Positions 5,953 through 57,221 of a stretch of 64,000 bases of DNA are shown here, piece after piece. The position numbers were made by a program, and so were the translations under genes. Origin of the DNA: Octopus sinensis. Lineage: Eukaryota. The notes under the pieces were generated by a model. It did no database searches. It was not told where the DNA came from and saw only the letters and a list, made by a program, of their open reading frames with translations. The stretch covers positions 41,416,001-41,480,000 of the forward strand of contig NC_043007.1 in the NCBI RefSeq assembly GCF_006345805.1, given 5' to 3'. Each line of letters opens with the position of its first letter. Within the stretch, counting starts at the first letter, position 1.

Positions 5953-6220
5953 GACAGTCAAAAATTGTGAAGCATGACTGTCACCACTACTACAGAACCT
6001 GAAGATTGCAGAAATTAAATTGATGATGAACTACTAGTTCAATCAGAATGAACATTTAACATTCTACTATTTTATTTTATTCGATTATATTATATTATCT
6101 TATAATATATCATTATAAGATTGTAAATAAAACGTGAAAATCAGACAAGGGTGGAATTCCTTTTATTAATATATTCTTCTATACACAATCACACACACCC
6201 ATATATATATCTATCTATAT

Positions 6221-7330
6221 CAAATCAAATCAAATCAAAACAAATCAAAATAGATGAACATCAATGGAATTTGTATCTTTGTGGTACCAGTGCCGGTGGC
6301 ACACAAGAAAACCATCCGAACGTGGTGGTAGCCAGTACCGCATCGACTGGCCTCCGTGCTGTGGGCACGTAACAAACACCATCCGATCGTGGCCGTTCGC
6401 CAGCCTCATCTGGCACCTGTTGTCGGTGGCACATAAAACAACCATCCGAAGACCTGGCAAGACTAGTCAGGCCATAACCCGTGGCCCCTACCTGGGACGT
6501 AGTCAGTCCACCTGTGCATACCTTCCTTCTTGTGACACTTGTGAAGACCTGTTGAGGCAAGTGAAAATCAAAACAAATCAAAATAGATGAACATCAATGG
6601 AATTTGTATCTTTGTGGTACCAGTGCCGGTGGCACACAAGAAAACCATCCGAACGTGGCCGTAACCAGTACCGCATCGACTGGCCTCCCCGCTGTGGGCA
6701 CGTAACAAACACCATCCGATCGTGGCCGTTCGCCAGCCTCATCTGGCACCTGTGTCGGTGGCACATAAAAACACCATCCGAAGACCTGGCAAGACTAGTC
6801 AGGCCATAACCCGTGGCCCCTACCTGGGACGTAGTCAGTCCACCTGTGCATACCTTCCTTCTTGTGACACTTGTGAAGACCTGTTGAGGCAAGTGAAAAT
6901 CAAAACAAATCAAAATAGATGAACATCAATGGAATTTGTATCTTTGTGGTACCAGTGCCGGTGGCACACAAGAAAACCATCCGAACGTGGCCGTAACCAG
7001 TACCGCATCGACTGGCCTCCCCGCTGTGGGCACGTAACAAACACCATCCGATCGTGGCCGTTCGCCAGCCTCATCTGGCACCTGTGTCGGTGGCACATAA
7101 AAACACCATCCGAGCGTGGCCGTCTGCCAGCCTCGTCTGGCACCTGTGTCGGTGGCACATAAAATCACCCACTACACTCTCGGAGTGGTTGGCGTTAGGA
7201 AGGGCATTCAGCTGTAGAAACACTGCCAGATCTGACTGGCCTGGTGCAGCCTTCGGGCTCCCCAGACCCCAGTTGAACCGTCCAACCCATGCTAGCATGG
7301 AAAGCGGACGTTAAATGATGATGATGATGA
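6221..7330 (+). repeat. Tandem array of ~332-bp units ending in an RTE-type 3' end with (ATG)n tail
   Basis: tagatgaacatcaatgg at 6251, 6584 and 6916 (periods 333 and 332). The third unit runs into ggcgttaggaagggcattcagctgtagaaac...ggacgttaaatgatgatg. Confidence 0.9.
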
Positions 7331-7369
7331 TATATATCTATATATATATGCATATGTATGTGTGTGTGT

Positions 7370-12838: not shown

Positions 12839-14264
12839 CCTTAGTGCAATTAAAAAAAAAACACTTTTCACTATCCAATCACCACCACCACCATCACCAT
12901 CTCTCTCTCTCTCTTCTCCCTCTCTGCCTTCCTTTAACCTCACCATCAGAACATCACCCAGTCTGCTAAAATTATTACATTTCCCCTACCTCACATCATT
13001 GACGCTTTTCTCTCCCCTCTTTTTCTCTCTCCATCTTTCTGTCTTACTTGTCATCTTATCCTCTTTTTCTCTCTCCTTTTTCATTCTCCTCTCTTTCCCT
13101 TCAACTAATCATATGGAAGCGTTATAATTACATTCCCTCTACCTCATGTCATGGACACTTCTCCCTCCTTATTTCTCCCTTCCTCTTTTTCTCACTCCTT
13201 CTTTTCTTTCTCCATCTTTTTCTCTAATCTTGCGAAAGCGTTACTGACAGGCTAAGTAACGCAATGATAAGTAGAATTATTATAAGATAAATAGTAACTG
13301 TTTCTGATTTTTTAATGGTTTCTAACATAGGCACGAAGCAAGTAATTCTGAGGGAAGCAGACTTGACAGTTATTTTTCTTTTTTTATCCTGAAGGGAGGA
13401 AAGACAAAGTTAACCACAGTGGGATTTGAAACCAGATTGTAAAGAACTGGAACAAATGCATCCAACACTAACAATTCTGCCAGCTCACTGCTTTGAATGG
13501 TTTCTAATTTTTAGGCACAAAGCCAGCAATCTCAAGAGGACTGGAGTTTGGTCAATGACATTGACTCCAGTACTTGACTGGTGTTTTATTTTATCATCCC
13601 TGAATGGACGCAAGGCAAAGGCATTTTTCTCTGATATTCTAATAATTATGCAAACTTTCTGCCGTTGAACAACAACAATAATTTTTGATTTTCATTGTAA
13701 TACATATAATACAGTTAAAATATGTAACATTGTTGGTGGTGAATGGTAGAACTAATACTGAAAGAGGTGGGCAAAATACCTTCTGGTATTTTAAAAAATT
13801 CCTTTTATGTTCTGAGTTAAAAACACACAAATGTTTTAAGTAACAGAATGACTAGGAAAAAATACCATGGAATGCCTGCTTTTCACTAATCATGCTATTT
13901 AGTTATCACACTTATCTGTATTCATTAATGAAAATCTGATGTACTTTGCTAAGATCTGGCAAGAATGATTAGACAAAGTTTCACTGATAAGATCTCATAA
14001 GGCTAAAACAAACCTGGACTTATCTGGTAAACTTCTGCTAGTGTACCTGTCTCAAGAGGCAGCTGTAATAGGAAAACACTTGCTGGAAAAGGGTATTGAA
14101 TTGAAGAGCAAAAATTTAAAATAATAAATGCTTTGGACAAAAGTTCCTTGTCTTTTTCCTTCTCTATGAGTTGTGATAGCTATTCCAAACGTCTGCAAGT
14201 GACGGATGTGACAGCAATAAATTACTATTGCCTTTCCATACTGTTTAAAACCAGATTCACTCCC

Positions 14265-14650
14265 TCTGGCTGTGTGGTAAGAAGCTTGCTTCCAAACCAC
14301 ATAGTTTCAAGTTCAGTCCTACTGCATGGCACCTTGCGCAAGTGTCTTGTACTAGAGCTTCAGGCCGACCAAAGCCTTGCGAGTGGATTTGGTAGACGGA
14401 AACTGAAAGACGCCCGTCGTATATATACATGTGCGTGTATGTATTTGTATTTGTCCCCACCACCGCTTGACAGCCGGCGTTGGTGTGTTTACGCCCTCGT
14501 AGCTTTGCAGCTTAATAAAAGAAACTAATAGAATAAATACCAAAATTTAAAAATAAGTACAGGGATCGATTCGTTCGACTAAAAAAAATACTTAAAGGTG
14601 GTGCCCCAGCATGGCCGCAGTCTACTGAGACATATAAAAGATAAAATAAC
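14265..14650 (+). mobile_element. Family A SINE
   Basis: ggctgtgtggtaagaagcttgc head to gcatggccgcagtct...taaaagataaaa tail. Confidence 0.8.
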
Positions 14651-15475
14651 TTAAATTCTAGGGTTGTCTCCCTTCTTTTTTTTTTTTTTCCTCTCATTAA
14701 ATTAGAATGTCACCTCCCACTTGGCTCATGACATGAAACGTTTTAGTTACCACGTTAACATTAAAGTAACAGTGAAGTATTGTAGGTTTTCTTTTCGTGC
14801 TTTAGAAATCAATACTTATGTTCATGTATTCCGTTTTGATCAGCTTTTGCAATATTTTTCTTTTTGCTTTGTCTTAACGGCGTTTATTATAATTTTTTTT
14901 TATTGTGAACACACCGTTATAAACGGACACACAAATGTTTTATAACCCATCTGTTTTACAATACATGTTTAACCATAATTAATAACAATCTCTTGTCCTA
15001 CAACGTTAAAAATGAGGGCTACTACTTCAATATTAAAGTAATAATCAAAAACCGGCGTTCATTTAAACGACTATACCCTTCCATCATTTTTTTGTCTCAT
15101 ATTTTTGCTATAAATCAATATTTATATACAACATGAATTCAAATTTGGCATTTAATGTTTTTTTTTTTATTTTTACGAGCTGTTATTATATAGTTTTTTT
15201 TTAATCACACCATGAATGTATCAATATATACGAATTATAAATCCTTTATATTTTGCATATTTATTTCCATGGGCGCAGCATGGTTAAATGGTTAAGCAAT
15301 CTGTTCCATAATTACAAGGTCCAAGTTTCGATTTCATTGAGTGGCGTGTTGGGCAATTATAACAGAAATGATATTGATAGGAGCCCGTTGGATGGGTCTC
15401 CAGTCTTGTTGATCCCCGTTAAGAATTACGTTAATGATACATGTATCTGTCGTATATTTAGCCATTTATACCAAG

Positions 15476-48700: not shown

Positions 48701-50695
48701 CCACACTGCAATGTATCTTCATAGATTAATATAGATTCTTTTTATAAAACACACACACACAAACACACACAGATTGAAGAGAATAGAAGCTATATCTAAA
48801 ACACACTGTACATGTATGTGCAGGTGGGTACATTTGCATTATGTACATGTTACATATACACATTTTTCACCTGTACACTGACACACATCCCCATGCTCAT
48901 ATTTGCACACACCTTTAGTGTAAATATATATACATGTGTGTATTTGTGCATGTGTATATAACACCAACACTCACACATGCAGACATATATGTGCACATGT
49001 GCACACACACCCACACCTCACATCTACTTACCTGAGTTGTGTAAATCTAGTTTCATAAAAAAATAAATAAATGTAATTGTAGCTATGCTCAAGATTTGAA
49101 ATCATTCTTTTGGCTGTTTATATAATGTGTGTGTGTGTGTATTCATGTGTGTGTTTATGGGGTTTTGTGTATTTTGTGTGGATGTATGCTTATGTTTGTG
49201 AGTTTTTGTGTATGTCAGTTTATGTGGTTGTGTATATTTGTATGTATGTGTAAAATTATATGGTTATGTGTGTGTGATTATGTATGTAAGTGTGTATGAG
49301 TGATTATGTGTGTGTTTATATGTATGCTTGTATATGTGTATGTTTCTTTATTAAGAAATATATACTGTAGACTGATTACAGAGACTTCCAGATTCTTATT
49401 TAACCAACTTTGTTTAAATTCTTCACTGGTTCAAAAAGGTGAGTCGTTGAACCTACTTCACCTAAAATTCATTTTATATTCTTTTTATTAATTCTAATAT
49501 TTTCCTTCCTGTTTTTCACATCATTGTTGTTATTTTTGTTTTCATTTAGAGAAGAATCTGGGTTCTTTTTTGCTCCATCTCTACAATTTTGTATTTTTCC
49601 TTCATTTCCCAACATTATTCTTCTGAGATTCTATCTGAATTTACCATTTGTATTAACATAAAACATCACTGTTTTCTATGAGGTACCATTTTGTTTTTAT
49701 GCTTAGATGGATTTCATAGTATCAGGAACTTTTGATATAGAGGAAGGAAGAGAGAAAAAAAAACATCATTTTTATCTTTTTGTTGTGATTTAGTGATGTC
49801 TGTCTGATAAGATTTTTGGCAAGTTAAGATTAAGATAAGTTAACTTTTATCTCTCATTTGTTATTGTTTTCAAACAGGAAAAAATCCTAACCTAAAAACA
49901 CTTTCTGAATAATTCTATGACATCAAAAGGAGCTTGGTGTAGGTGAAGACTGCAGATGGTTTCTTCAGAGTCGACATTTCAGTTAAGAGAGTTCTGTAGT
50001 TATAAGGCCAGTTAGATAAAATGGGATTTAGTGAGGAAATAACTGTAAACCAAACAGCAATCATCAAGAGAGTAGTATTAAAATATAAAACAAGAAAAAT
50101 CAAAGAGATAATGATGGTAGGATTCAGGAATTGCATGTGCATACATGAGTGAGTGAGTGAGTGAGATATGGGATGTATAGGCATGACTGTGTGATTACTT
50201 TGTTTGGTTTTCATCCTTACACTTTGGGGTTTTGTCCTAGAGTTTGACAACACACAAGTGCTTTGGGAAGGAAATTGGAGAATGATAACTGTGAGGAGCT
50301 TGTTATAAATGAATGTTTTTATGCCTTGTAACTTAGCATTTCAACATATGGAGATTGATAATGTAACTACCAGCAGTGCCCCAGCATGGCCACAGTTCAA
50401 AGACTGAAACAAGTAAAAGGATGAAAGAATGTGTGTGTGTGTGTGTGTGTAATTTTACTATCATCATTATTTTAACATCCATGATTCTGTGCTTGCGTTC
50501 ATCAGACAAAACTTGTTGAGGTAGTGTTTCTACAGATGGATGCTCTTCCTGTCATCAGCCCTTGGCTGTTTCCAAGCAATGTGATATTTTCACAGCACAA
50601 ATTATCAAACATGTTTATGCAGGAGACTGCAAATGAACATGACTGCTTAATTGATGGAGATGTTCATTTCCAGTTAGCACAGAATGTCAAAACTT

Positions 50696-50741
<46 letters not shown>

Positions 50742-51200
50742 ATGATCATCATCAGGAGGGAGCACAGAATTTTATGTCCACTTCTCTTGCTGGTATGGGT
50801 TGTCACAGTCCAAGTCACTTCTTATTAGGATTTTGTTCTTAAACATTGGCACTCATACATATCATTTGGTTTGGTTTCTGCGGCTGACTGACCTTCCGAC
50901 CACCAACCACTTTACAGAATGTACTATATGCATTTTCTTATGGCATCCATGCTAGACAAGTTGAATTGTCCTCATCAAGGCATGATTAAAGGGATCGACT
51001 CTTTCTCCCCTAATCTGCCATTCATTTTACAGTGTGTACAAGGTGTGTTTTTATGGTACCAATGTTAAGGAGGCAGCCTTGCTCACCATTCACTTGCCAA
51101 TAGAATACAGGTTTCTTCCTAGCTCTTTTACAGGAGGTGGAGTGCTTTGTACATAATAGGCTGAGTAACATAAAGAGGAATGGGAGAAAAAATAAAAAGA

Positions 51201-51242
<42 letters not shown>

Positions 51243-52040
51243 AAGACATTGGGATCAAGAGTATGATGAGAAAAGGGAGGAATAATTGAGGGTGAAATTA
51301 GGAGAAGAGTGATTGGTAATAAACATGAACAAAGGTAAAAGTGGGTGATGCAGTGAAGACAAGGGTTGGTGCTAGGTGGCATAAATGTGGTGCAGAGGAG
51401 AAAGAGTGCTGTCTAGTAGTACAACAAGGCAAAGCTGGAGTGAATTGAGTAGAACTATGAAAGTGATCCAATGTGGGCCTAGTGAAAGGTGATGGGGAAG
51501 AGTGATGTGGATGGTACAGTCAGTGTAGTTGGCAGAGAGAGATGGAAGTTAGAGGGTTTATGAGTCATGAAGAGTTGGGAAATGGAAAGCAGGTGAGCAA
51601 TAAGTAGATGAGAGATGAGGCAAGGATGCGAGCTAAGGGAGCAACATATGTTGGCATAGCAGGATACAAAAATACATACTATGGCTTCTAAACACTATTA
51701 CCTTTGTTTCAGGGTACATTTTACCATGGGTGAACAGGTCTTCTGCAGCATGGCATATTGTCAATTAGAATGGTCTTTTGTCATCTCCTCTGTTAGATGC
51801 AGCATCTTCAGGCATCCTTCCCTACTTGGTCCTAAGTCTTTCTTGCAAAGTCCTCTAGCTTGGAGCACACTGTACTTCCATATGCAGCAGTCATCCTCCA
51901 TATACATCATAAGCCCATACCAGCACAATCTCCTCTCCTTCTCACCACAACTGATACCTCTTATACCCAGTCTCTCAATTCATTCATGCATAGTAACATT
52001 ACACATCCACCAAGCATGCTAGCTAAATTACTTCTAGTCT

Positions 52041-52347
52041 TTGCTGGGGCTGCCTGCTGGAGCCTAGCAGCAGGTATTTAAAGGGAAATTTGACAAGACA
52101 GTCAGTTGCCTGCTGACACTCATTGACGCTACATCAAAGAGGCCAGGGAACAGAAGAAAGAAGAAGAAAGAAGACATGCACCCAACACCAGAGCTAAAGA
52201 CACCTCCGAAGGGGGGGGGGGCATGTCAAAACGGTTCAGGAGTTGGGCCGAAACCGGACGTGGTTCCTCCTGATGATGTATTGAGCTAACTGGATCCTGT
52301 AAAGGAGCTGGTGTGGTAGCAGACCATGAAGCACGGTTGAATTTCCT
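52041..52347 (+). mobile_element. ~305-bp repeat, pLTR-like (copy 1)
   Basis: ggtatttaaaggg TATA-like motif and cctgatgatg...gaagcacggttg; inverted homologue at 56917-57221. Family assignment is inference. Confidence 0.55.
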
Positions 52348-52354
52348 ACTCCAT

Positions 52355-52898
52355 TCAAGGTCCATATCTCTCACTTTTATGTAGCATCACAGTTTTAGCA
52401 CAAGTGTCATACCATCTATTATTCATTCTGAGGGAAAAGATTTTTGTTGCTAGCAGGAGTATTGACTCCCTGAATATTTTCCAGCTCATTCTAAACCTGG
52501 TTACTGTACTTTCCAAACAACCACTTTGCCTACTTATCATGTCACTTAAATAACAAGTTATTGACTATTTCTAGTAAACCAACCAAGCATTGAAGAGTTT
52601 TTATTTCCAGTGTACTCTTAGTACATATTGCTTCACTGCTTCCACCGTGTTACAAGGATTATCTTCTCACTTAGTCTTCCTGTGGCTCCACTCCATCTTT
52701 TGTGTCCCTAGTCTACAGTGAGTATGACATATAGAGTTCCTACCAACTTGTTTTCCTCATAGTGAGCATATGATCTGTCCTCTTGATTACTTGCTAACAC
52801 TTTAGTGTTTGCTAAGTTTATCTTTATCTTGAGGTCTCCTGATTCTAGCATTTGAATTACATGTTTAGTTACAGGCAGGTTAATAGAAGAGATAAGTG
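52355..52898 (-). mobile_element. Old RTE LINE fragment
   Basis: LESGDLKIKINLANTKVLAS..GHKRWSGATGRLSEK and SGCLESTVTRFRMSWKIFRESILLLATKIFSLR..YDTCAKTVMLH. Confidence 0.75.
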
Positions 52899-53039
52899 TT
52901 CTGTACATTTATAGGGGAATTACAGGCAGGCTGACAAAAGAGATAAGCATTGTATGTGGCAGCCACAGTTGAGTAATACATATGTACATAAATGCATACA
53001 TACCTATATGCATGCATATATGCATGTATTTTTGCCCAT

Positions 53040-53101
53040 ATGTTTGTATGTATGTATGTATGTATGTATGTATGTATGTATGTATGTATGTGTATATATA
53101 T

Positions 53102-53153
<52 letters not shown>

Positions 53154-53304
53154 ATATATATATATATGTGTATATATATATATATATATGTGTGTATATA
53201 TGTATGTATGTGTGTATATATATATATGTATGTGTATATATATATATATATGTATATGTGTGTATATATGTATGTATGTGTGTATATATATGTATGTATG
53301 TGTG

Positions 53305-53335
<31 letters not shown>

Positions 53336-53365
53336 GTGTGTGTATATATATGCATGCATGCATGT
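53040..53365. repeat. (TATG)n/(TA)n compound microsatellite
   Basis: Directly visible; source of ORFs 52880-53630. Confidence 0.95.
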
Positions 53366-53473
53366 ATATATGTATTTATGTACGTATGTATTGCTAAAGT
53401 GCAGCTGCCACTTTCAATGCTTATCTCTTCTGTTAGCCTGCCTGCATGCAATTCCACTATATATATATATATA

Positions 53474-53912
53474 TCATCATCATCATCATCGTTTAGCGTC
53501 CGCTTTCCATGCTAGCATGGGTTGGATGGTTCAACTGGGGTCTGGGAAGCCAGAAGGCTGCACCAGGCCCAGTTTGATCTGGCAATGTTTCTACGGCTGG
53601 ATGCCCTTCCTAACGCCAACCACTCCATGAGTGTAGTGGGTGCTTTTTACGTGCCACCGGCACAGGTACCAGACGTGTCTGGCAAACGGTCACAATCGGA
53701 TGGTGCTTTTTATGTGCTACCGGCACGGGGGCCAGGCGAGGCTGGCAACGGCCATGAACGGATGGTGCTTTTTACGTGCCTCCGGCACGAGGCCAGTCGG
53801 GGTGGCACTGGCAACGGCCACGAACGGATGGTGCTTTTTACACGCCACTTATCTCTTCTATTAACCTGCCTGTAACGGCAACGGCCACGAACGGATGGTG
53901 CTTTTTACATGC
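53474..53912 (-). mobile_element. Young family C insertion
   Basis: (CAT)n plus cgtttagcgtccgctttccatgctagcatggg...; CpGs intact; subrepeats ggcaacggccacgaacggatggtgctttt. Confidence 0.85.
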
Positions 53913-54163
53913 CACTTATCTCTTCTATTAACCTGCCTGTAACTAAACATGTAATTCAAATGCTAGAATCAGGAGACCTCAAGATAAAGATAAACTTAGC
54001 AAACACTAAAGTGTTAGCAAGTAATCAAGAGGACAGATCACATGCTCACTATGAGGAAAACAAGTTGGTAGGAACTCTATATGTCATACTCACTGTAGAC
54101 TAGGGACACAAAAGATGGAGTGGAGCCACAGGAAGACTAAGTGAGAAGATAATCCTTGTAACA
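53913..54163 (+). repeat. Inverted duplicate of 52648-52898 (250/251 identical)
   Basis: Direct base-by-base comparison; single difference cacatg vs catatg. Confidence 0.95.
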
Positions 54164-54546
54164 TATATATATGTTTGTTTGTTTTTGTGTTTAGTTATGA
54201 TAAAAATAACTCTGCATTAATCTGATGGGTTACTCTATACTTATGTAGAGTACAAATTTATTATTCTTATGCAAGAATGTCATTGACAGTGGCTTCAAAG
54301 TCTCAACCTTTGTTAGCCTCATGGCTTAGCTGGCCAAAACTTCAAAATCACTGTCAACAACATTCTTGTATAAGAATTATATAGTAGAATAAAAAATAGA
54401 AAGTCCTTGGTCCAGTATTATATATTTGAAAAACTGAATGGAAATTTTTACAAGTTATTAGGTGTTTTATTTTTTTTGTAAACACCTTATAAACATCTAA
54501 TTATTAAAGTGTAAAAATTATCACAAAAGCCAATTCTATTCATTGA

Positions 54547-55800: not shown

Positions 55801-56916
55801 AGAATTCAGGAAAACAATTTTGTCACTACAAAGCCATGCAATTTTGATGGGAGATTTTAGTTTAGATCACTTCAAAACAAGAAATTTGTATCAGGACCAA
55901 GGATGACCTCAAGCAGTTTGTTATGAAAAGGGTTACAGAATAAAAACCTTACTCTTAAAAATAATTTTGTTCTCTTAAGCACACCAGGAACTTTAATATT
56001 CCACAGTGCACAATTCATTTCAAATCAGTTATTAGAATTTTAACTTTTTTGTCCTCAAATGTGATGTTACTTTTGTTTGAGTGAAAACATTAATCAAATA
56101 TTTCCTAGAGATGTGGGACATAGAAAATTTCAGAAAACAGTGAGGTAGACCTATGATCAAAGACATTCCAACTTTGAACACCTGAGGGTTGTTTCTTTCA
56201 TACCGAGGATGACACTATATCCCTTTTTCCTAAGATAATAGTATAGTATTTGAAGGAGATTTGGCTGCTGTTTATAGTAAGGTAGGCACTCACATAGTCT
56301 CCCTTGCTGAATGTCAGGGGTGTACATTCAAGGTGTGTTGCTGATACACTTCAAAACTATTTCTACCAATTCCATATTTTCTGTACTACTTATAATCACA
56401 GTGTAAATGCCATTAAAACATATGGCATATATTTTATAAAATCATGTTCCTGCTTACCTTTTCCTTCCCTCTTCTTTCATTTACAATTTTTTAGCATACC
56501 ATAAGAAAGGAAAAAGAAAGAAGAAAAGGGTCGTTATTTATATCAAACCCTAAACCACAGTAAGGATTATTAATATGCTTGGGAATTTGAGTGTAGATTA
56601 ATAAATAACATGATATTCGTCTTAATTAGAATCAACTCTTGACATACAGGGCAAATAACACTATATAATGTGTGATTAGAGAAGAACCATTGAAAATATA
56701 GAAAGGTAGAGAGTATTGCCAGAAGATTTCTGCAAACATCATTTCTATATGTTGATATACTTTTAAAAGTTGGTAGTAAGAGCTTAGATTTGTTATACTC
56801 TAAGGTTTGTAGTTCCATGACACTCCCCAACTCCAGACCATTTATATTAATGGCTTCCTTAGAATTTTTATTCTCCAACTCCTTTCTTGGAGTAAACAAA
56901 TATTTACCATCCTTAT

Positions 56917-57221
56917 AGGAATTTCAACCGTGTTTCGTGGTCTGCTACCACAACAGCTCCTTTGTAGGATCTAGTTAGCTCAAGACATCATCAGGAGGAA
57001 CCACGTCTGGTTTCAGCCCCTACCCCTCTACCGTTTTGATTTGGCGGACCCCCTCCCCCCTTTCGGAGGTGTCTTCAGCTCTGGTGTTGGGTGCATGTCT
57101 TCTTTCTTCTGTTCCCTGGCCTCTTCGATGTAGCGTCAATGAGTGTCAGCAGGCAACTGACTGCCTTGTCAAATTTCCCTTTAAATACCTGCTGCTAGGC
57201 TCCAGCAGGCAACCGCAGCAA
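56917..57221 (-). mobile_element. ~305-bp repeat, pLTR-like (copy 2, inverted)
   Basis: Reverse complement aligns with 52041-52347. Confidence 0.6.

Follow-up and report, generated by a model that had tools for sequence, protein, structure and literature searches.

How does a stretch of flanking DNA come to stand, inverted and almost unchanged, at the 5′ end of a neighbouring retroposon? The question is raised by a locus of Octopus sinensis (contig NC_043007.1, positions 41,416,001 to 41,480,000; these 64,000 nucleotides are the window, in whose coordinates positions are given), for which an initial annotation had proposed that a retroposon switched template twice at its 5′ junction and thereby copied 251 bp of neighbouring DNA. 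The two arms in question, A and A′, are inverted copies identical at 250 of 251 nucleotides, the sole mismatch being an A at 52770 against a G (the reverse complement of 54041). Their homology ends abruptly: the match runs to the last base at both ends, none is left outside the arms, and the outer flanks, CCACCG and TATATA, do not duplicate one another. No further copy of arm A was found in the 64-kb window or in 61 kb of Octopus vulgaris, and diverged paralogues of the donor arm lie nearby. A 28-nt motif was matched five times against zero expected, so the repeat structure did not arise by chance. A MITE or DNA transposon with terminal inverted repeats was rejected as an explanation, as the arms are unique in 125 kb and lack a target-site duplication. 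At the protein level, an arm ORF had no homologue in a database in which annotated O. vulgaris proteins are all that represents this taxon, which makes this a weak negative. Exact-product look-ups aimed at an independent assembly or an empty allele, with both arm ORFs, the ORF across the junction and a SINE ORF, gave no match, and a 31-mer scan of metagenomes was empty. The positions of all features are collected in Table 1.

Table 1 Features of the inserted block and its flanks, in window coordinates.
Feature	Position	Strand	Remarks
Donor arm A, original copy and template	52648-52898	+	Unique sequence runs on from either end
Inner 31 nt of arm A, copied twice (53846-53876, 53913-53943)	52868-52898	+	Exact match
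Left arm of older inverted repeat	52904-53021		Outer 45 nt repeat the inner end of arm A directly, in diverged form, at 51-nt spacing
Compound (TATG)n/(TA)n microsatellite, loop between the older arms	53039-53391		TRF
Right arm of older inverted repeat	53346-53467		Outer end enters the TA tract; 52904 pairs with 53467
(TA)8 tract, target site and 3′-OH primer side of the SINE insertion	53458-53473		Read from the sequence
Octopus SINE, 5′-truncated	53474-53845	-	(ATG)6 tail 53474-53491, core to ~53638, subrepeats 53639-53845
Initial 31-nt inverted copy of 52868-52898, counting the shared CAC	53846-53876	-	31/31 identical
Further SINE segment of 36 nt, either the next subrepeat (n+1) or 53810-53845 copied again	53877-53912	-	35/36 identical
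Arm A′, new inverted copy of 52648-52898	53913-54163	-	250/251 match
TA tract beyond the block, rejoining point	54164-54172		Read from the sequence; resembles a target-site duplication of 53458-53473

The element beside arm A′ is a minus-strand member of an Octopus SINE family built of a core of ~165 nt, subrepeats of 62–66 nt and an (ATG)n tail. Besides the present element, about ten copies lie in the window, and 61 kb of O. vulgaris contain a further 13 (23 blocks over the combined 125 kb). Their cores are 80–92% identical to the one studied here, and ORF matches come from O. vulgaris only. Its members have variable 5′ ends, at different points of the subrepeats or with a 5′ head; here the 5′ end falls inside a subrepeat, at GCCAC. 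SINEs make up 11.6% of the O. vulgaris genome (PMC13282606), and two reports describe RTE LINEs as active in octopus (PMC13282606; PMC9115989); the sequence analysed here contains no LINE with the tail of this family. The element had been annotated as a young, RTE-tailed one. Its membership of a real SINE family is clear, and its youth is compatible with the sequence: all 21 differences from a majority consensus are shared with other copies and none is a private substitution. The core lies ~9% from that consensus, which is a crude one rather than that of its own subfamily, and the SINE could on this measure be older than the arms.

As initially described, the SINE sits in a (TA)n site and A′ runs back into (TA)n, so that the block formed by the two is bounded by TA on the left (53458-53473/4) and on the right, with a single nucleotide (A at 54163) common to the end of A′ and the right-hand tract. 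Only 57 (TA)≥5 tracts occur in the 64 kb. Simple repeats are, nonetheless, a weak sign of target-site duplication, and the tails of other family copies also adjoin TA-rich DNA. Target-site duplication varies across the family, from ~15 nt at window 6220-7331 to none at another locus, L001 14608; as the family can insert without one, the TA tracts are weaker evidence for a single inserted block than they may seem. The block nevertheless identifies the younger arm, since A′ lies within it and the left arm passes into single-copy DNA. We therefore agree that the right-hand copy is the new one. The contiguity of the donor with an old RTE fossil, on which that assignment had rested, was not borne out: no Pfam domain was detected in six frames of 50500-52960, and local alignment of 52000-52960 with the SINE consensus did not rise above shuffled sequences.

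At the 5′ end of the SINE, the sequence passes into an exact reverse complement of the inner end of arm A, returns to the SINE by repeating 53810-53845 with one difference (C/T at 53843/53910), and then enters A′, in agreement with the initial reading. Both entries into arm A take place at a CAC that is common to the SINE subrepeat (consensus GTGCCAC/CGGCAC, with the slash marking the junction) and to arm A (CAC/TTATC), as had been noted. The return junction, gtaac/ggcaac, has no microhomology under either of the readings that follow. TRF and a repeat search both describe the same stretch as a 67-bp tandem pair, 53810-53876 and 53877-53943, identical at 66 of 67 positions. Two template switches, the first of them aborted, would account for this arrangement. 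So would a single template switch combined with a separate tandem duplication of 53810-53876, by later slippage or by fill-in of staggered ends, a reading to which we give somewhat less than an even chance and which concerns only the doubling of the switch. It draws on the cleanness of the two-copy tandem and on the near identity of the two SINE pieces, which differ only as CACGCC and CATGCC; CATGCCAC occurs as a natural variant among the subrepeats, CACGCC only here, so that one origin and a later change might suffice. It would, however, require a second rare event at one spot within ~0.4% divergence, with a duplication boundary that lacks microhomology, and a random duplication would only occasionally produce a 67-bp unit that fits the preceding SINE periods of 63, 62 and 66. 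This retention of the subrepeat period mildly favours a switching process. A single junction plus a duplication fits as well, and the sequence does not distinguish it from an aborted first switch.

What determines the point of entry into arm A is suggested by a feature absent from the initial annotation. An older inverted repeat, ~85% identical with one 4-nt indel (52904-53021 and 53346-53467), flanks the (TATG)n array and is nested exactly within the A/A′ repeat. It forms the dominant stem in both minimum free energy and centroid folds of the single-stranded DNA, with 52910:53461 as the outermost pair. Because the alignment sets 52904 against 53467, 52898 falls opposite 53473: the nick site and the entry point lie at mirror positions, each 12 nt outside the predicted stem. 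Outside that stem, the first GTG to be met is the entry microhomology at 52896-52898. When 53474-53912 is taken out, the palindrome is continuous to within 1 nt, and its identity steps from 99.6% to ~85% precisely at the SINE junction. This step, together with the perfect arm ends, speaks for recent copying and against an ancient repeat kept homogeneous, and the nesting of the older repeat inside the new one implies that the event extended an existing palindrome. The arrangement resembles a foldback-primed duplication in that a pre-existing inverted repeat lies near the break and the new copy starts outside it in mirror register. It departs from one in that the priming end is SINE sequence, 372–439 nt of which separate the new copy from the genomic end.

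The polarity of the template follows from the orientation of the parts. A SINE whose tail lies to the left has its cDNA in the + strand, and since A′ on that strand is the reverse complement of A, the template was of + polarity; this upholds the earlier deduction of a + strand template 0.6–0.8 kb upstream, here the primer side of the insertion. The new copy begins at the 5′-truncated SINE end, at a 3-nt microhomology. We consider it somewhat more probable than not that a single complex retroposition event lengthened the pre-existing palindrome. A LINE endonuclease, whose LINE is presumed to be of RTE type, would have nicked the + strand in (TA)n, 6–12 nt outside the old inverted repeat, and the 3′-OH at ~53473 would have primed reverse transcription of the SINE RNA from its (ATG)n tail. 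After cutting of the second strand and resection of the minus strand over at least 0.8 kb, the old repeat in the single-stranded + strand would have formed a hairpin, placing the base of the cDNA flap opposite 52898. The 5′-truncated cDNA end (...TACAtgcCAC-3′) could then have annealed at the nearest GTG (52896-52898); against 52896-52905 it pairs at 4+3 of 10 positions. Extension along its own strand would have proceeded for 28 nt at first and, after a return to the SINE, for 248 nt, reaching 52648. The cDNA end would finally have been let go, joined to the reciprocal TA end through the 1-nt microhomology and filled in, leaving SINE and A′ between TA tracts. We infer the order of these steps, the resection and their assignment to one event from the anatomy of one locus in one assembly, and arm A may have been copied by either the reverse transcriptase of the element or a host polymerase.

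Fold-back in this form requires a cDNA flap of ~370–440 nt to loop to its own base. The return from arm A to the SINE without microhomology is a point against the fold-back model.

The insertion and the copying could also have been separate events. The SINE would then have inserted first, with a TA duplication, beside the old repeat, and a later double-strand break on its 5′ side, at the fragile TA tract or palindrome, would have been repaired by fold-back; after resection and trimming into the SINE, a host polymerase (Pol delta, Pol theta or an MMBIR-like activity) would have made A′ without reverse transcription. The geometry and the microhomologies fit this course too, and the age of the SINE is only loosely constrained, by the ~9% distance from a crude consensus. 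A single microhomology used repeatedly, with a short copy broken off, is characteristic of templated or snap-back end joining (PMC4912351, PMC5728401), and yeast breaks near natural inverted repeats lead to foldback-primed inverted duplications (PMC10622511). Inverted duplications are, furthermore, a common class in human long-read data, with a median of 284 bp and microhomologies of 1–15 bp. The break would, however, have to delete exactly the remaining 5′ part of the SINE, as TA directly follows A′ without a SINE remnant, and the 36-nt SINE piece between the copies requires that a SINE template was still present. By a rough count, with prior odds for a coupled event built on event ratios from human data, we would expect such a course to be 20–40 times rarer than complex insertions. 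We regard it as improbable, if still the best of the alternatives to a single event.

Local DNA and a nascent transcript had been offered as alternative templates. Non-LTR reverse transcriptases switch between RNA templates. The element enzyme might accordingly have jumped onto a nascent or cleaved + strand host transcript, and the polarity would be consistent with this if the + strand of the locus is transcribed. L1 chimeras provide a precedent: U6/L1 and L1-mRNA chimeras (PMC4476161, 10.1101/2025.02.02.635956) carry extra templated sequence at the 5′ end of the retrocopy, as here, but their acceptors are RNAs from elsewhere in the genome, whereas the octopus acceptor is the flank of the insertion site itself, in primer-strand orientation. 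An RNA template leaves unexplained why the entry point mirrors the nick site across the old hairpin, and entry was internal, by microhomology, rather than at an RNA 3′ end. Neither an Rfam search, which returned nothing in the 64-kb window, nor a Pfam search in six frames of 50500-52960 gave evidence of a gene or transcript. The mirror geometry favours fold-back of a resected + strand, and DNA is thus quite probably the template; the transcript appears unlikely, slightly more so than repair of an older SINE insertion.

An assembly artefact, in which the consensus near the microsatellite is chimeric or mis-polished, has to be considered in a region rich in microsatellites and palindromes that is represented by assembly sequence only. 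It would not readily produce what is seen: the locus is not the simple X followed by the reverse complement of X that marks fold-back read artefacts, as the SINE and the right flank are unmirrored, the arms differ at one base, unique sequence lies on both sides, and the junction microhomologies make biological sense. We judge an artefact to be quite improbable. A chimeric master SINE that already carried the junction is opposed by the position of the donor, only 0.6 kb away and with diverged local paralogues, and no further copy of the SINE-to-A junction was found in 125 kb. Least probable of all is that an ancient A/A′ palindrome was held identical by gene conversion, or that A′ arose first by foldback of a TA end, with the SINE arriving later at TA/CAC: without the SINE block the right side does mirror the left within 1 nt, and the family can insert without target-site duplication at the edge of a TA tract, but the SINE marks the exact point at which identity falls, the arms match through to their final base with no homology left beyond them, a TA 3′ end pairs poorly with 52899-52903 (the cDNA end pairs at 7 of 10 positions), and two to three independent events would have been needed at one nucleotide position in a very short time.

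Typical inserts templated by Pol theta are a few to tens of nucleotides long and stem from within tens of nucleotides of the break, unlike the octopus copy of 251 nt from 575 nt away. The likeness to Pol theta snap-back, or synthesis-dependent MMEJ (PMC4912351, PMC5728401, PMC5068794), lies in the copying of the same strand in cis from a microhomology of a few nucleotides and in repeated rounds of annealing, short synthesis and dissociation, with which the 31-nt copy and the reuse of CAC may be compared. In yeast foldback priming (Al-Zain et al. 2023, PMC10622511), too, a short natural inverted repeat by a break forms a hairpin, and priming by the folded-back 3′ end yields an inverted copy of the neighbouring DNA. 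There, cells deficient in Mre11 or Sae2 end up with a chromosome that is first hairpin-capped and later dicentric, and heterologous flaps are trimmed, whereas at the octopus locus the flap of ~400 nt of SINE cDNA was kept and the end rejoined to its partner. Twin priming was rejected, as the inverted segment is genomic flank (52648-52898) rather than the element's own RNA and the SINE itself is uninverted; L1 5′ inversions made in that way (Ostertag and Kazazian 2001) share the inverted segment at the 5′ end and the junction microhomology, but their inverted part is element RNA copied from the reciprocal end.

The closest parallel comes from human L1, for which copying of genomic DNA from near the integration site, self-annealing of cDNA ends and foldbacks after 5′ hyper-resection have been described (Mendez-Dorantes et al., bioRxiv 2024, PMC11702581). 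Both cases have a 5′-truncated primary end from target-primed reverse transcription with nearby genomic DNA copied in, and for both a resected end with the cDNA tip annealing to its own strand is proposed; microhomology at the 5′ junction is reported for 5′-truncated L1 insertions generally. The differences are that the L1 events took place in human cells and the octopus one is a germline SINE insertion, fixed or polymorphic, with a presumed RTE-type driver; that L1 foldbacks leave a hairpin-capped chromosome and the octopus locus is a sealed insertion; and that the octopus entry point appears to have been set by a pre-existing inverted repeat, the 251-nt copy being preceded by an aborted 31-nt one. 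On this comparison, we would place the locus with a kind of event already published for human L1, in unusually clear detail.

A SINE 5′ junction with an inverted copy of the flank was seen in one of the 23 SINE blocks in 125 kb. A second candidate, at L001 14608, where an inverted repeat adjoins the 5′ end of a SINE, was rejected and serves as a control only: it is a plain SINE insertion into one arm of a pre-existing repeat-family pair, and homology picks up at full identity behind the SINE tail, as for a plain insertion.

The locus constitutes a natural record, at nucleotide level, of a non-LTR insertion going wrong, in which one can still read the primer side, the tip of the truncated cDNA, two copies of the primer strand (one aborted, one complete) and the place of rejoining. 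Its weight is modest, as befits a single locus in one assembly, but it suggests that local hairpins steer where a cDNA tip lands and that palindromes can grow outward stepwise. That retroposition beside hairpin-forming microsatellites or inverted repeats is a recurrent source of long perfect palindromes in octopus, with the reverse transcriptase or a coupled polymerase copying the resected primer strand in cis, is at present a speculative extension that we think unlikely to hold in general. As initially pointed out, arms this similar are expected to form a 251-bp stem in any transcript of the locus. The cephalopod ADAR system is very active. If such events do recur, young perfect hairpins would seed long double-stranded RNA in transcripts, as substrates for cephalopod ADAR or small-RNA pathways. 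If they are common, SINE activity would be linked to the birth of long perfect hairpins, which matter for genome fragility and, where transcribed, for dsRNA formation and A-to-I editing.

Arm A, the donor, and A′, its new inverted copy at the 5′ end of a SINE, are reverse complements over 251 nt with a single mismatch (A versus G at 52770). Homology stops abruptly at either end: the outer flanks (CTTCCACCG; reverse complement of ATATATATAT...) and the inner flanks have at most the 4-nt TACA in common. The inner end of arm A is present again, as an exact 31-nt copy, between the two SINE pieces, and the CAC at both junctions is common to the SINE subrepeat (consensus ...GTGCCAC/CGGCAC) and arm A (CAC/TTATC). 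Direct reading of the region and repeat searches bore out every detail of the sequence as described in the initial annotation; the evidence throughout is a single assembled sequence. The window yielded neither long ORFs nor Rfam matches.

Coordinates of the features at the inverted duplication and of related repeats
Feature	Sequence	Positions
Arm A (donor)	Window	52648-52898
A′ (inverted copy)	Window	53913-54163
SINE, minus strand	Window	53474-53845 and 53877-53912
SINE subrepeats	Window	53639-53845
Inner 31 nt of arm A	Window	52868-52898
Exact copy of the inner 31 nt	Window	53846-53876
67-bp tandem pair	Window	53810-53876 and 53877-53943
SINE stretch repeated by the second piece	Window	53810-53845
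TA tract, target side	Window	53458-53473
Old inverted repeat	Window	52904-53021 and 53346-53467
Ancient direct repeat	Window	52860-52905 and 52911-52956
48-nt inverted match	Window	52301-52348 and 56916-56963
SINE copy with 5′ array	Window	6220-7331
Control SINE insertion	O. vulgaris L001	14463-14889
Inverted copies of another family	O. vulgaris L001 (OX597836.1)	12870-13151 and 14190-14905
Tandem array	O. vulgaris L001	338-820

In the SINE, a core of ~165 nt lies between an (ATG)6 tail and subrepeats whose periods are 63, 62 and 66 nt. Its ORFs matched only Octopus vulgaris 'hypothetical proteins', and three O. vulgaris loci reached via these matches held 13 further copies. Some copies stop at various places inside the subrepeats and others have a distinct 5′ head, as LINE-driven, 5′-truncating retroposition would predict. 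An RTE LINE is the putative partner. A study of O. vulgaris reports RTE LINEs, along with thousands of young SINE insertions (PMC13282606). Against a crude majority consensus the core shows 21 differences over 259 positions, and each of these states recurs in one or more of 23 other copies. As no difference is private, the copy may be young and part of a subfamily. Every subrepeat, here and in the other copies, holds a small palindrome, GTGCC-ACC-GGCAC; both switches fall after GCCAC, inside this hairpin motif, which could be a polymerase pause site. A full-length-looking copy elsewhere in the window, flanked by a target-site duplication of ~15 nt (atatatatctatctatat / atatatctatatatatat), has a 5′ part built as a tandem array (period 332 bp, ~3.3 units, 96-98.5% identity). 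This array is made up of the 5′ head ((AAATC)n ... ATCAATGGAATTTGTATCTTTGTGGTACC), two subrepeats and ~130 nt of unrelated sequence, and it resembles a nascent SINE-derived minisatellite.

A second inverted repeat, overlooked in the initial annotation, lies exactly within the new one and borders the (TATG)n/(TA)n array on both sides. Its arms are ~85% identical with one 4-nt indel, which suggests that a palindrome-forming event had already happened once before at this locus. The outermost 45 nt of this repeat also match the inner end of arm A as a diverged direct repeat, so that a 28-nt motif occurs five times at the locus and nowhere else in the window. Through this ancient direct repeat (~51-nt spacing, 28-nt core 86% identical), the inner end of arm A is related to the outermost part of the old inverted repeat. 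The RTE fossil proposed beside the donor was not recovered: six frames of 50500-52960 yielded no Pfam domain, and similarity to the SINE consensus did not exceed that of shuffles. The left flank of the locus has a 48-nt inverted match (92%) 4.6 kb downstream, probably a fragment of another repeat family.

The second SINE piece repeats the end of the first with one C/T difference, and each piece together with the arm A sequence that follows forms one unit of a 67-bp tandem pair spanning the junction (66/67 identical). If switching produced the pair, the tip would have made a 28-nt excursion, resumed on the SINE template and left it a second time at the same CAC. Alternatively, a single junction was duplicated afterwards. 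No microhomology is present at the tandem boundary. The two pieces differ as CACGCC versus CATGCC, the latter a natural subrepeat variant and the former unique. The chimeric unit stays in the SINE period (63, 62, 66, then 67), so the pieces could be consecutive subrepeats of the RNA, which mildly favours switching over later duplication.

With the SINE tail on the left, the cDNA is the + strand, grown rightward from a 3′-OH at ~53473. On this strand A′ is the reverse complement of A, so the template was of + strand polarity, as had been claimed, and was located on the same side as the primer. We folded 52600-53845 as single-stranded DNA, which covers the primer side of the + strand and the cDNA as far as the first switch. 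In both minimum-energy and centroid structures the old inverted repeat forms the dominant stem, with 52910:53461 as outermost pair. Position 53473, where the target ends and the SINE tail follows, and 52898, the first arm A base copied, both lie 12 nt outside this pair; the alignment register, which pairs 52904 with 53467, likewise makes 52898 the mirror of 53473. Once 53474-53912 is removed, the palindrome is continuous to within one nucleotide. Moving outward from the old stem, 52896-52898 is the first GTG encountered, and the cDNA tip TACAtgcCAC could pair with 52896-52905 at 4+3 of 10 positions. Cleavage of the second strand and 5′-to-3′ resection of the minus strand would make the + strand single-stranded and usable as template, and the old hairpin would keep it close to the base of the flap formed by the cDNA. 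A nascent + strand host transcript, the other source that had been proposed, has the right polarity too but leaves the mirror position of the entry point unexplained; we infer that DNA fold-back is the probable source.

Several observations favour a single event. A′ begins at the truncated tip of the SINE, and independent events at one nucleotide position within ~0.4% divergence are unlikely a priori; on the clock that PMC13282606 implies, this divergence corresponds to roughly half a million years, with a very large error. In 125 kb there are 23 SINE blocks at least 150 nt long, and no other has, at its 5′ end, a non-repeat sequence copied in inverted orientation from the neighbourhood. The arms match right to their ends, and identity steps down sharply to the ~85% of the adjoining old repeat, which is unlike gene conversion of an old palindrome. 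TA tracts, of which the 64-kb window has only 57, border the SINE and A′ block on both sides. In an O. vulgaris control an inverted repeat likewise adjoins a SINE 5′ end; immediately past the tail, homology starts again at full identity, indicating plain insertion into one arm of a pre-existing repeat-family pair. This insertion lacks a target-site duplication, so the family can insert without one, which weakens the argument from the TA flanks. The two inverted copies forming that pair belong to another dispersed family and are 96.6% identical to each other and ~87% to other members, which hints at local inverted duplication or gene conversion there too. The same O. vulgaris locus also holds a tandem array (~40 bp period, ~96% between units) in an intron-like region. 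An improbable alternative for the octopus window is that a SINE was already in place when the fragile TA tract or palindrome beside it broke and was repaired by foldback priming. Twin priming is excluded by the inverted part not being element sequence, and a MITE by the lack of other copies in 125 kb and of a target-site duplication outside the arms.

The octopus locus, read as a single event, is an example of a kind already known. Human L1 insertions can take in DNA copied from the vicinity of the target; L1 also generates inversions and inverted duplications at target sites, its foldback junctions being attributed to hyper-resection and self-annealing of the cDNA 3′ end (PMC11702581). Yeast forms foldback-primed inverted duplications from breaks near natural inverted repeats (PMC10622511), and Pol theta and SD-MMEJ involve snap-back synthesis in cis with repeated attempts (PMC4912351, PMC5728401). 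The present case is germline, invertebrate and a SINE. Its distinctive trait is the apparent role of a pre-existing hairpin in setting the entry point, by which a palindrome already present would have grown outward by 251 bp with the SINE as a bulge. As had been predicted, a transcript across 52648-54163 would fold into a 250-251 bp dsRNA stem in perfect register.
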